In this document: piece by piece, positions 57,986 to 64,000 of the stretch
How positions within the stretch are numbered: the first letter of the stretch is position 1
Layout: the number at the start of each line of letters is the position of its first letter
Assembly: GCA_904063045.1 (NCBI GenBank)
Contig: CAJFCJ010000020.1
Span: 1,744,034 to 1,808,033, forward strand
Reading direction: 5' to 3'
Length of the DNA: 64,000 bases
From: Dimorphilus gyrociliatus
Taxonomy: Eukaryota; Animalia; Annelida
The notes under the pieces: model-generated
The model's input: only the letters and a program-made list of their open reading frames with translations
Database searches by the model: none
What the model was told of the DNA's origin: nothing
Position numbers and translations under genes: made by a program

Positions 57986-58023
57986 TGACGTCAGACTACC
58001 GCCACGTGATTCGTTCCTTTCTT
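57986..58023 (+). promoter_or_regulatory. eEF2 core promoter: CRE, E-box and pyrimidine (TCT/5'TOP-like) start tract
   Basis: TGACGTCA at 57986-57993, CACGTG at 58003-58008 and TTCCTTTCTT at 58014-58023, about 65 nt before the ATG. eEF2 is a classic TOP mRNA. Confidence 0.5.
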
Positions 58024-58086
58024 AGGTCGCCATTGAGGCAACGCACACAGCTTTGCAGTTGTCCGGAAGACTCTTAAACATCTACC

Positions 58087-61000
58087 ATGGTAAGCCTTTG
58101 TTGTGTATGACATTAAATTAAAATGTTGCTGGTATTAATAGCTATGTGATCACCAAATTTCGTGATTAATTTTAAATGATTTTAATGCGAAATTCATGGA
58201 TATAAAAATAGTGCTTCACGCGTGATCATTGAAATTTCTCAACAAGTATCCATGACTTGGTAATTAGGAATCTTCGCACTACCTCAAGTTTATTAAATAA
58301 ACCATAAGCTATATATGATGTTTGACATGTCTTATTGTGATCATTTTTACTATTTTCAATAAAAATTAATTATTCACTTAATGCGCAGGTTAACTTTACG
58401 ATTGACGAAATTCGGTCCATTATGGACAAAAAGAAGAACATCCGTAACATGTCGGTTATTGCCCATGTCGATCACGGAAAATCAACTTTGACCGATTCCC
58501 TTGTATCCAAAGCCGGAATTATCGCTGCCTCCAAGGCTGGTGAGGCGAGGTTCACTGACACCCGTAAAGACGAGCAAGAGCGTTGTATCACTATCAAGTC
58601 AACGTTAGTAAAATAAAAATAAAAAGTTAAGAGTGCCATAAGCTTATCATATTTTTTCTTAGCGCTATCTCCCTTTACTACGAATTACCCGAAAAAGATT
58701 TGAAACTTGTCCAACAACCAAGAGAAGAAGGAATGAACGCTTTTTTGATCAATCTTATCGATTCTCCCGGCCACGTTGACTTTTCATCTGAGGTTACTGC
58801 CGCTCTCCGTGTTACCGATGGAGCGCTTGTTGTTGTTGACTGCGTATCAGGTGGGTTTCAATGATTTTGAGAAAATTCTTTCTTATAATTTTTTTTACAG
58901 GTGTTTGTGTGCAAACTGAAACTGTTTTACGTCAAGCTATCGCTGAACGTATTAAGCCAGTTTTGTTCATGAACAAGATGGATTTGGCACTATTGACACT
59001 TCAATTGGAAGCTGAAGATATGTACCAAACTTTTCAGAGAATCGTTGAAAGCGTTAACTGCATCATTGCTACTTATGGAAGTGAAGACGGTCCCATGGGC
59101 AACGTACAAGTTGACCCATCCAACGGAACTGTTGGTTTTGGTTCTGGTCTACACGGTTGGGCTTTTACTTTGAAACAGTTTGCCGAAATGTACTCCGCTA
59201 AATTCAAGATCGAAGATGTTAAATTGATGAGGAGATTGTGGGGAGATCAATTCTACAATGGAGAAGACAAGAAATGGAACAAGTCAGGAGGAGATGGTTT
59301 CGAACGTGGATTCTGTAAATTTATCCTTAAGCCAATCTACACTATCTTCCACTCTTGTACGAAGAAAACCAAGAAAGAGGCTCTTGGCTTTATTGAAAAA
59401 ATGAATATAAAATTGACTGTCGAAGAGAAAGAACTAGAAGACAAGAAATTATTGAAAACTGTCATGAGAAAATGGCTTCCAGCTGGTGACGCTCTATTGC
59501 AGATGATAACCATCCATTTGCCATCACCAGTTACTGCACAAGCTTACCGTACAGAATTGTTGTACGAAGGTCCAATTGATGACGAAGTTGCCGTCGCTGT
59601 TAAGAAATGCGATGTGAATGGACCTTTGATGATGTACATCTCTAAGATGGTACCCACATCCGATAAGGGACGTTTCTATGCTTTTGGTCGTGTATTTTCT
59701 GGCTTGTGCAAAACTGGAGAAAAGGTCAGAATCATGGGCCCCAACTTCGTACCTGGCGGAAAAACTGACTTGTACAAAAAGAGCATTCAACGTACCATCC
59801 TTATGATGGGAAGATACGTCGAACCAATTGAAGATGTACCCTGCGGAAACATTTGTGGTTTAGTCGGAGTCGATCAATTTTTGGTTAAGACTGGTACCAT
59901 CTCAACTTTTGAGCAAGCCCACAACATGCGTGTCATGAAATTCAGCGTTTCTCCTGTTGTAAGAGTAGCCGTAGAGCCAAAAAATCCAGGAGATTTACCA
60001 AAATTAGTAGAAGGATTAAAACGTTTGGCTAAATCTGATCCTATGGTTCAATGTTCAATTGAAGAATCCGGAGAACACATTGTTGCCGGAGCTGGTGAAC
60101 TTCACTTGGAAATCTGCTTGAAAGATTTGGAAGAAGATCACGCTTGTATCCCGCTAAAAAAATCTGAACCAGTCGTTTCATACAGAGAAACAGTAATTAA
60201 AGAGTCAGATCGCACCTGTTTGTCAAAATCTCCCAACAAGCACAATAGATTGTTCATGAGAGCAGCTCCCTTGCCCGATGGACTTCCCGAAGAAATTGAT
60301 GAAGGAGATATCAACCACAAACAAGAAGCCAAAGAACGTGCCAGAATTTTGGCCGACAAGTATGGCTTTGATGTCACTGAAGCAAGAAAAATTTGGACTT
60401 TTGGACCTGATGGAAGTGGACCCAACATGGTTGTTGACTGTACTAAGGGAGTTCAATACTTGAACGAAATCAAGGACAGCGTCGTCGCTGGTTTCCAATG
60501 GGCAACGAAAGAAGGTGTTTTATGTGAAGAAAATATGAGAGGAATCCGATTTAACATTCACGATGTCACTTTACACGCTGATGCTATACACAGAGGTGGT
60601 GGTCAAATCATCCCAACAGCTCGTAGATGTTTATACGCTTGTGAATTGACCGCTGATCCACGTTTGATGGAACCTGTTTATCTTGTTGAAATTCAGGCAC
60701 CAGAAGGAGCTTTGGGCGGTATTTACCCAACAGTGACAAAGAAGCGCGGTCATGTATTCGAAGAAACTCGTGTCGCTGGAACACCTATGTTTATAGTTAA
60801 GGCTCATTTACCTGTTAATGAATCATTCGGTAAGCATACTATTCTTAACATTTAACATTAAATCTTGACACTCACGCTGCCTGGATACCAATACTGAATT
60901 GGGACCGGAAAGCGACAAACAGTAGTTATGCGAAACTTTCATAAGGTTGATTCGTTACTGTGGTGTCATAGATAATCAGCGACTCTACGTGAGAGCGCAT

Positions 61001-61283
61001 GCTTGTATATGCCATAGCCTGTGCAGCTGCTAGTCAGCACTGACCACACGTGATAAACCATGCAAGCTATAATTTATTCGTTATTTCAGGTTTTACGGCT
61101 CAGCTTCGTTCTCAAACTGGTGGACAAGCTTTCCCACAATGTGTATTTGATCATTGGCAAGTAATGGGAGGCGATCCTCTTGATGGAAAATCTAAGCCAT
61201 TCGACATTGTTATGAGTACCAGAAAGAGGAAGGGTCTGAAGGAGAGCCTGCCTAATTTGGAGGACTACTTTGATAAATTATAA
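58087..61283 (+). CDS. EEF2: Eukaryotic translation elongation factor 2
   Basis: Exons 58087-58089 (ATG only), 58389-58603, 58663-58850, 58901-60829 and 61090-61283. Motifs: [24 protein letters not shown] (eEF2K Thr site), [14 protein letters not shown] and the diphthamide site [14 protein letters not shown] (His codon 60589-60591). Confidence 0.98.
60866..61074 (+). ncRNA. U17/snR30 (SNORA73-type) H/ACA snoRNA in the last eEF2 intron
   Basis: The 5' domain is closed by TGACAC(60866-71)/GTGTCA(60963-68). Then come H box AGATAA (60970-75), a small hairpin (60979-98), a 3' stem GCTTGT(61001-06)/GCAAGC(61062-67) flanking m1-like ATATGCCAT (61007-15) and exact m2 AAACCAT (61055-61), and an ACA-position triplet ATA (61069-71) 7 nt after m2. 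Length is ~209 nt. Confidence 0.85.
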
Positions 61284-61593
61284 ATCGCCGGAGCCGAGAA
61301 GATATTAATATATTAACTCTTAATATATATGATAGGAATTATTCTTTTCTTTTCATGTTCGGCTGCTAGGTTGATGTAAAATACATTGATTGACCGCAAA
61401 ATTGTCTTATTTTTAGTTTAATATTAATTTATTAAATGATAACTCCGATTAGTACTTTGGCTAATGAACATTGATTCGTTTGTCTTTTGCAAGCACACTT
61501 CATCTAGAGTTCGAAAAACTAAAAACGATTTGATGAGAAATTGCACTAAAAAACGTTTGGCATTAGAAGGCAAGATGGCAGCACTTTTAGTCG

Positions 61594-64000
61594 TCACTGA
61601 GAAATGTCGACGTCAAAATGCAATTCGGGTGTATTAGCGGTTTCGATATCGATTTCGCCTTCCTGTTGCTGCTCCTCTTCATCTTCGTTTTCTTCTGCAG
61701 ACTGTGAGCCCTTTCTAAGTTTCCTAAACACTACAACCGCGACAACAACTAGTGCCAAAGTAACTACTGCAGTCCAAGCAACAAGTACAACTAGTGACAC
61801 CTGCAGGGTACCAAGGTTACCAGAACTTGCGAGTATTGGAGAGGATTTTAAAGGAGAAGTTTGAGGCTTTGGAACTAAACCATTCCCGGTAACAGAAACC
61901 TCTAAACTTATACAAGTGTACGATCCATAGGAATTTATACAAATGTCTGAACTTTTCTTACACGGTTTGTTTGCACATTCATCGATATCTGTTCACAAGT
62001 TGTTATTTATAATTTAATAGTTGAAATAGCTTACTTGATTATGTATTTACGCACCTCGACAGCCAAAAGTTGAATTATCAACTACAAAACCTGTGTCACA
62101 TTCACAGTGAGGATTATCCCCATCTACGCAACGATGGGCGCAACCTCCATTTCGGAAACTGCATGTTATATTGGTCGAATTCATACCAGAAACACCACCT
62201 CTTGAACCATCAAACACTGATAAAAATCAAAATTAGAGTTATTACAATTAAACGAAAATATATGGTAGCTAACTAACATGATCGGCAAGATCTTGAATTC
62301 TTTTCAAGCGTGTAGCCACTATAGCAGTTGCAACTATACCCAATTTGTTCATCTATACAATCCTGTTCACATCCACCATTCAAATAATCACATTCATTGA
62401 TATCTGAAATCATAAGTAATTTCAATCAATATAAATATCTAATATTTTTGAAAAGGTAGATAGTTAAATTCAAATGCAAGAAGTATACGACTTTGCTTAC
62501 CGTAACAAGTCTGATTTGCTCTTAATCTATGCCTATAGGGGCTAAAATCGTATTGACAAACGCAAACTGCCTCGTATTTCAATCTATTCACTTGGCTTCC
62601 TGGAGCATTTTTATCATAAACTGTCATAATCTCGCAAATTCCGCCTTTTTCCTGACAACCCATATCATTACACAGTTGACCATCTCGGAAAACTACAAGT
62701 TAAGAATATATATTAATTTCATTAAAGCTATAGCTAATATATCGCACTTACTCTCGTCATTGGATATTGCATCTCTTCCGGGTGGACCTGTTTGACCGGT
62801 TGAACCCTGCACACCAGGAGGTCCCGTTTCACCCGTTGCTCCAGATTTACCTGGCGCTCCTGTGTCTCCAGTGAAACCTGTTTGTCCTGTTGGACCAACT
62901 GGACCTCGACTGCCAGTTGGTCCTGGTAATCCTGTCCATCCTGTAGCACCTGTTTGACCTGAAGGGCCAGGTGCTCCAGCTCGACCGCTAGCTCCTGTCG
63001 ATCCTGTTGGACCTGATGGACCAAGGGGTCCAAGCGGACCAGTTGCTCCAGGTGAACCAGTAAAGCCAATTTCTCCTTGAGGACCGGTAAATCCAGGGAG
63101 ACCAGTGAATCCAGTCGGACCTGATGGGCCCCTAATACCAGTTGCACCCTGTTCGCCGGAGTTGCCAGTGTCTCCTCGATTTCCTTTCTGACCGGTATTC
63201 CCGGTAAATCCTGTAGGACCACTGGGACCACGTTGCCCCGTGAATCCCATGAGGCCAGTGGCACCAGGTAAGCCAGTATATCCTGTAAATCCTGTTGGAC
63301 CGCTGGGTCCACGATCACCCCTATCTCCTTTTATTCCACTTAATCCAGTATCTCCTTGGAATCCTCTAGGACCAATTTCTCCTTTCACTCCTTCTGGACC
63401 TTGATCTCCCCGAGCTCCTGCAACTCCAGTATCACCTGGTCTTCCTGTAAATCCAATTTCCCCTTTTTGTCCATCTGATCCAGCAGGTCCAGGTTCGCCT
63501 GTAGCTCCTGGTAAACCAGTTGATCCAGTAAATCCTGTCGGTCCTGATGGTCCTACTCTTCCAGTAAAACCTTGCTCTCCACGTGGTCCTAAAATATAGT
63601 TATAAATTTTTTATATATGTACAGTATGAGTTTACATCAGATCGTATAAAATTCTTACCAGTGAAACCAATATCTCCAGTAAAGCCTATTTGCCCCGTAA
63701 AGCCTCTTTCACCAGTAAATCCTTGATCTCCTTTTTGACCTGTATTTCCTGTAAAACCGGTGGGTCCAGAAGGTCCCCTGACGCCCGTGAAACCTCTTTC
63801 TCCAGTGAAACCTCTCTCACCAGTGAATCCTTGTTCTCCTTTATTACCCTTTGCACCAGTGTTTCCAGTAAAGCCAGTAGGGCCGCTAGGTCCTCTTTGT
63901 CCAGTGAAGCCTCTTTCACCAGTAAATCCTTGGTCTCCTTTTTGGCCAGTGTTTCCAGTGTAACCAGTGGGGCCACTAGGTCCTCTTTCTCCTTTCTCCC
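61594..64000 (-). CDS. 3' part of a collagen triple-helix + EGF + transmembrane protein (5' end beyond window)
   Basis: Exons >64000-63659 and 63588-62752 encode uninterrupted Gly-X-Y. Exons 62692-62501, 62403-62278 and 62216-62055 encode EGF-like modules. Exon 61988-61594 encodes a truncated cbEGF, a stalk, the TM segment LVVLVAWTAVVTLALVVVAVVVF-RKLRK and an acidic tail to TGA. All junctions are phase 1. Confidence 0.88.

Follow-up and report, generated by a model that had tools for sequence, protein, structure and literature searches.

We report that the last intron of the eEF2 gene of the annelid Dimorphilus gyrociliatus probably encodes this species' orthologue of U17/snR30, a small nucleolar RNA (snoRNA) of the box H/ACA class, a reading to which we assign a probability of roughly 0.8 on the basis of sequence. 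The gene lies in a 64,000-nucleotide (nt) stretch of genomic DNA (contig CAJFCJ010000020.1, positions 1,744,034 to 1,808,033 of the forward strand; assembly GCA_904063045.1), which as a whole is referred to here as the window and whose own numbering is used throughout. Few processing snoRNAs are essential, and U17/snR30, which is needed for 18S ribosomal RNA (rRNA), is among them; it is poorly annotated beyond vertebrates, yeasts, and a few model organisms. An initial annotation, made from the letters of the window, had proposed a U17/snR30 snoRNA in this intron, and the proposal is supported by a full-length alignment to the SNORA73 covariance model, an H/ACA fold, an exact m2 motif at the 7-nt spacing from the box, and a 3' hairpin that is preserved in a related species.

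A predicted U17/snR30 snoRNA in the last eEF2 intron

In a permissive Rfam scan of 58000-64000, the SNORA73 family (RF00045) aligned over its entire length (model 1-219 of 219) to 60865-61074 on the + strand with 26.5 bits (E 0.0014), and this alignment keeps the terminal stem, H box, m1, m2, and tail in register. The same scan gave no match of any other H/ACA family to the region even at E<=10. Across the 64-kb window (both strands, 4227 families), SNORA73 was the sole Rfam match with E<=1 (E 0.014). An unconstrained minimum free energy (MFE) fold of 60865-61074 reproduces the H/ACA layout, forming the hairpin-hinge-hairpin-tail structure at -61 kcal/mol (z -2.2). The parts of the predicted snoRNA are as follows:

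60865..61074, + strand: predicted U17/snR30 (SNORA73-family) H/ACA snoRNA, ~210 nt (Rfam RF00045 alignment and MFE fold; 5' end +/- few nt)
60866..60968, + strand: 5' hairpin domain, enclosing the two hairpins CCAAU/AUUGG and ACAGUA/UACUGU (MFE pairs)
60970..60975, + strand: H box AGAUAA, fitting ANANNA (unpaired hinge in the fold; aligned to AGAgcA of the model)
60979..60998, + strand: short hinge hairpin GCG-CUCU/AGAG-CGC (MFE fold)
61001..61067, + strand: 3' hairpin with basal stem GCUUGU/GCAAGC, the internal loop of which presents m1 and m2 (MFE fold, homologue in the relative L007)
61007..61015, + strand: m1-like motif AUAUGCCAU (consensus AUAUUCCUA, PMC7601244 table 1), with G at 61011 (sequence; identical in L007)
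61055..61061, + strand: m2 AAACCAU, exact, in the 3'-hairpin internal loop, 3' strand (sequence; identical in L007)
61069..61071, + strand: AUA box, a variant of the ACA box (sequence; ACA at the homologous site of L007)

The stem that closes the 5' domain, UGACACU/GGUGUCA, pairs 60866-60872 with 60962-60968 in the MFE fold. The m1-like motif and m2 lie on opposite sides of the 3' hairpin's internal loop, the gap between m2 and the AUA box is exactly 7 nt (61062-61068), and the box is located 1 nt past the stem of the 3' hairpin and 3 nt before the predicted 3' end at 61074. The layout that had been read in the initial annotation (closing stem, inner hairpins, H box, hinge hairpin, basal stem, m1-like motif, and m2, with ATA exactly 7 nt past AAACCAT) was recovered in full. 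As its hallmarks, U17/snR30 has m1 (AUAUUCCUA) on one strand of the 3'-hairpin loop and m2 (AAACCAU) on the other, and this element is invariably 7 nt 5' of the ACA box (PMC2664660, PMC7601244). The DNA pattern AAACCAT-N7-AYA occurs four times in the window versus ~1 expected, and only in the copy described here is it accompanied by the stem, an m1 partner, and a covariance-model match.

The 3' hairpin is conserved in a related species

A search with the last eEF2 exon identified the Logan contig L007 of a relative (run SRR23372216), which carries a 74-amino acid open reading frame (ORF; P0121) that is 92% identical and the coding DNA of which is 88% identical to the window. The contig begins exactly at the 3' hairpin and continues through the intron tail and the last exon into ~1.2 kb of downstream DNA, and the hairpin (L007 3-69) occupies the same position in the intron as that of the window. 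A query with the final 200 exon 4 residues gave no fragment exceeding ~81% identity, and in a third related species (L012) eEF2 is visible only as spliced mRNA.

Between the window and L007, the basal stem, m1 (G included), and m2 are identical at 28/28 positions, and five differences are in the upper stem and loop. From the hairpin to 3 nt past the box, 69/76 positions are identical, compared with 45/63 (71%) of the third codon positions and 11/15 positions in the intron tail; the difference between the hairpin and the third codon positions has a Fisher p of 0.004. On its own, the L007 hairpin matches SNORA73 model 145-219 with 22.4 bits. Of the m2, stem, and H-box spacing whose conservation in relatives the initial annotation had called for, the part in the 3' hairpin was found in L007.

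In L007, the box is a canonical ACA, also 7 nt past m2, and AUA in the window is therefore a recent, species-level C-to-U change. The proposed replacement of ACA by AUA is thus evident from the comparison with L007, but it is not a novelty because AUA is a recognised alternative ACA box (PMC6984369, PMC8763049). Two DNA-pattern matches in JGI metagenomes were considered as U17 homologues and rejected as chance because they are inside a frame that looks conserved and protein-coding and because SNORA73 does not match them.

As a separate observation, 61285-61600 aligns to L007 287-620 (3' untranslated region (UTR) and intergenic DNA to the next gene) with an identity of 90-92%, which exceeds the 71% of the eEF2 third codon positions and hints at constrained regulatory or RNA elements in this downstream DNA.

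The m1 variant and its predicted pairing with 18S rRNA

In the m1-like motif AUAUGCCAU, the AUAU-CC frame of AUAUUCCUA is retained, whereas the U at 61011 is replaced by G and the final UA by AU. The U-to-G change had been noted in the initial annotation; because it is shared with L007, it is not a private mutation. In T. brucei snR30, m1 is altered and the 18S changes are compensatory (PMC2664660), which shows that members of the family can have a changed m1 as long as the 18S pairing is kept. An Rfam scan of the 64-kb window gave no 18S, and the following duplex energies were computed with assumed 18S target sequences rather than the 18S of this species:

Window m1 against the assumed, usual 18S site AUGGAAUA: -3.7 kcal/mol (7 pairs, one G-A mismatch)
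Canonical m1 against the assumed 18S site AUGGAAUA: -6.4 kcal/mol
Window m1 against the assumed 18S site AUGGCAUA: -10.4 kcal/mol

Most likely, the G in m1 opposes an A of the usual GGAAUA in a single G-A mismatch that is tolerated, and two additional pairs (the terminal CCAU with AUGG) may make up for part of it. Alternatively, the conserved U-to-G change in m1 could be matched by an A-to-C change in rm1 of expansion segment 6 (ES6) of the 18S rRNA in this lineage (GGAAUA to GGCAUA), which we consider unlikely. Because rm1 matters for ribosome function too (PMC2664660), we infer that a tolerated mismatch is likelier than a changed 18S in this lineage.

A second U17-like copy and the weighing of alternatives

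Among the public sequencing runs, X19 behaves as poly(A) RNA of Dimorphilus gyrociliatus, with an eEF2 exon depth of ~100,000 and A-tails at 61401. This run also contains a second, diverged U17-like copy on a 318-nt contig, which has 7 differences over 72 nt relative to 60998-61069 and an unlike upstream sequence. The presence of a diverged second copy fits the multi-copy nature of U17 in other animals (PMC7601244), and we count it in favor of the U17/snR30 identification. In the 30 visible letters, the second copy has AGAGUU at the place of the H box, a poorer fit to ANANNA than AGAUAA. An apparently compensatory C-G to U-A pair in the hinge hairpin relative to the second copy was not used because the local MFE fold of that copy differs. 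Separately, the sequence ATAAACCAT--AAGCTATA at 58297-58313 in eEF2 intron 1 (58090-58388, 299 nt) resembles the U17 3' end ATAAACCATGCAAGCTATA with a local alignment score of 27 versus a maximum of 24 in 200 shuffles; Rfam gave no match at 58297-58313, and the site may be a relic of another U17 copy in the first intron or a chance resemblance.

Six observations weigh against the identification as U17/snR30. First, the score of 26.5 bits is far under the RF00045 gathering score of 74; the gathering score is a curators' cut-off based mainly on vertebrate sequences and not a biological feature. A default Rfam scan does therefore not report this copy, and the covariance-model check that the initial annotation had suggested came out in favor with respect to the full-length alignment and the uniqueness of the match in the window but not with respect to the gathering score. 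Second, m1 has G where all species in PMC7601244 table 1 have U. Third, the intron of the relative was compared from the 3' hairpin onward only. Fourth, the two-sequence comparison of the window and L007 yielded no compensatory pairs. Fifth, the 3'UTR and intergenic DNA likewise share 90-92% identity with L007, and the conservation of the hairpin is therefore only moderately informative. Sixth, the intron is covered in X19 by one error-free contig (60806-61118) that spans both exon junctions at a depth of ~160, or ~0.1% of the exon depth, and that therefore fits unspliced pre-mRNA as well as a snoRNA; the run data are Logan contigs, which carry no information on RNA ends or local depth.

The alternative that survives best is that the intron holds a redundant or decaying U17-derived copy, the essential U17 being a paralogue or encoded at another locus, and that the G in m1 and the AUA box reflect early relaxed constraint. 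Such a scenario would account for the second copy in X19, for the departure of m1 from the AUAUUCC found in all species of PMC7601244 table 1, and for the change of the box from ACA to AUA since the split from L007. However, the G in m1 is common to a species in which only 71% of the third codon positions are identical, the basal stem, m1, and m2 are unchanged between the two species, AUA is a functional box variant (PMC8763049), and it is the paralogue that, in its visible letters, has the worse H box. We consider a decaying copy quite unlikely. It is less probable still that the element belongs to a different kind of genuine H/ACA snoRNA, e.g. a pseudouridylation guide that is merely U17-like: the generic layout fits any H/ACA member and the covariance-model score is modest, but no other H/ACA family matches the region, the exact m2 (GAUAAACCAUGCA) is common to the vertebrate consensus, and a spacing of 7 nt from m2 to the box is a U17-specific trait (PMC2664660). 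Finally, a chance resemblance, in which a structured, GC-richer intron gives no RNA product, would be in line with the score under the gathering score, the fold z-score of only -2.2, and an X19 intron contig that gives no proof at read level of a stable RNA, but is highly improbable given a single-family E of ~3e-7 on 6 kb (obtained by division by 4227 families; by our own scaling, this would come to ~0.01 over a few hundred Mb of genome), the coincidence of motifs, spacing, and stem, the retention of the element with a canonical ACA in L007, and the independent paralogue in X19.

eEF2 as the probable host gene

The predicted U17/snR30 is in sense orientation within an intron of a gene of the translation machinery, which we also count in favor of the identification, together with the matches to other snoRNA families in the eEF2 loci of two other animals. 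The host gene has the following structure:

58087-58089, + strand: ATG, the end of eEF2 exon 1
58090-58388, 58604-62, 58851-58900, and 60830-61089, + strand: the four eEF2 introns
58901..60829, + strand: eEF2 exon 4, the large exon upstream of the host intron (joined to 61090 in spliced contigs)
60830..61089, + strand: last eEF2 intron, host of the predicted snoRNA (260 nt, GT..AG)
61090..61284, + strand: last eEF2 exon, including the stop codon

Exon 4 translates to a sequence that shares 77-95% identity with elongation factor 2 proteins, and the Dimorphilus gyrociliatus eEF2 is only 77-80% identical to named animal proteins; these homology searches were done exon by exon. In a tree of eEF2, the position among animals was not resolved, and the sole grouping was with two transcriptome relatives (94-95% identity). 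Removal of the last intron was observed in contigs of four public runs, X19, X1, X2, and X20 (joint 60828/61089, cut +1). In agreement with the initial annotation, this 260-nt intron is GC-richer than its neighbors, with 41% GC in the intron and 45% in 60865-61074 compared with 20-28% in the other three eEF2 introns and 34% in the window.

Several further features of the gene were observed. The distance from the predicted 3' end of the snoRNA to the 3' splice site is 15 nt only (61073-61089), and the sole yUnAy-like branch candidate is UUUAU with its A at 61076, directly 3' of the snoRNA; because L007 has CUUAU at an equal distance, the branch point probably adjoins the end of the snoRNA. The poly(A) tails in X19 start after 61401, placing the eEF2 cleavage site ~117 nt past the stop codon. 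A pyrimidine tract, TTCCTTTCTT, at 58014-58023, ~65 nt 5' of the eEF2 ATG, resembles a putative 5'-terminal oligopyrimidine start; such starts are typical of snoRNA host genes.

We consider eight further eEF2 loci of animals, i.e. those of Paralvinella, Helobdella, Trichoplax, Biomphalaria, Potamilus, Dysidea, and two Logan genomes, the latter of which have ORFs that suggest the same intron position as in the window. None of the eight has a SNORA73 match at E<=1. The Biomphalaria eEF2 (L004 4828-8483) has at least five SNORD12-like matches, two of them above the gathering score, and the Paralvinella eEF2 (L001 5596-6105) has two SNORA38-like matches, both sub-threshold. Human EEF2 hosts SNORD37. 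With other snoRNA matches in eEF2 and U17 in none of the eight loci, eEF2 is an ordinary snoRNA host in which U17 appears to be lineage-specific. Among the papers retrieved on SNORA73, EEF2, and host gene, judged by titles, no precedent for U17 in eEF2 was evident. The hosts of U17 vary by lineage, being U17HG in mammals and, in frog and fugu, the genes for ribosomal proteins S8/S7 (PMC7601244). The claim of a new host gene in the initial annotation is thus in line with the eight other animal loci, while variation of the host as such was already known.

Proposed pathway and implications

The sequence, the fold, the motifs and their spacing, the covariance-model match, the conservation of the 3' hairpin, and the splicing of the intron are directly supported; from these, we infer that a stable RNA is excised, that it binds proteins and pairs with 18S, and that it is functional. 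Specifically, splicing of the eEF2 pre-mRNA would release the intron, the H/ACA core proteins (dyskerin/Cbf5, Nhp2, Nop10, and Gar1) would assemble on both hairpins and on the H and AUA boxes, and exonuclease trimming of the excised intron would leave a ~210-nt RNA ending 3 nt past AUA. In the nucleolus, m1 and m2 in the loop of the 3' hairpin would pair with rm1 and rm2 of 18S ES6, and this pairing would support the early cleavages and the folding that yield 18S rRNA, without pseudouridine formation.

If the identification is correct, this locus supplies the genome annotation with a copy that is missed by standard Rfam thresholds, and eEF2 would be added to the hosts of U17; like the hosts of frog and fugu, which encode ribosomal proteins, it belongs to the translation machinery. 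The locus would also provide a natural m1 variant whose core G is shared by two species. This variant would mean either that a central mismatch is tolerated in the essential m1-rm1 helix or that the snoRNA and rRNA co-evolved; if true, a matching 18S change would represent animal snoRNA-rRNA co-evolution at a site reported to be conserved everywhere but in trypanosomes.

Comparison with known U17/snR30 systems

The predicted U17/snR30 in eEF2 is a further member of a known family, and what appears to be new is the host gene and the conserved m1 variant. Vertebrate U17 (SNORA73, RF00045; E1/U17) is alike in its size of ~210 nt, its intronic location, the hairpin-hinge-hairpin-tail layout, the H box, the exact m2 AAACCAU, the GA-N-AAACCAUGCA context, the 7 nt between m2 and the box, and the predicted position of the box 3 nt from the end. 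It differs in its hosts, SNHG3/U17HG or RPS7/S8 (PMC7601244) as opposed to eEF2, and in that m1 is AUAUUCCUA rather than AUAUGCCAU; the box here is AUA, and the score of the window copy is 26.5 relative to the gathering score of 74. Yeast snR30 shares m2, the spacing of m1/m2 to the box, and the role predicted here of pairing with rm1/rm2 of ES6 for 18S processing (PMC2664660), whereas it is 606 nt long, has its own transcription unit, and has a canonical m1. The snoRNA matches in eEF2 introns of other animals share the host locus but are modification guides and not U17. Among invertebrates, the C. elegans U17 homologue CeN96 is similar in length (221 nt) and has the exact m2 (PMC7601244, table 1), but it retains AUAUUCC in m1 (AUAUUCCUU), as do all species in that table. 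A parallel for the m1 variant is Trypanosoma brucei snR30, in which m1 is altered and m2 is unchanged (PMC2664660); there, in contrast to the tolerated mismatch that we favor for Dimorphilus gyrociliatus, the cognate 18S has changed in a compensatory manner and an extended helix of 10 bp is formed.

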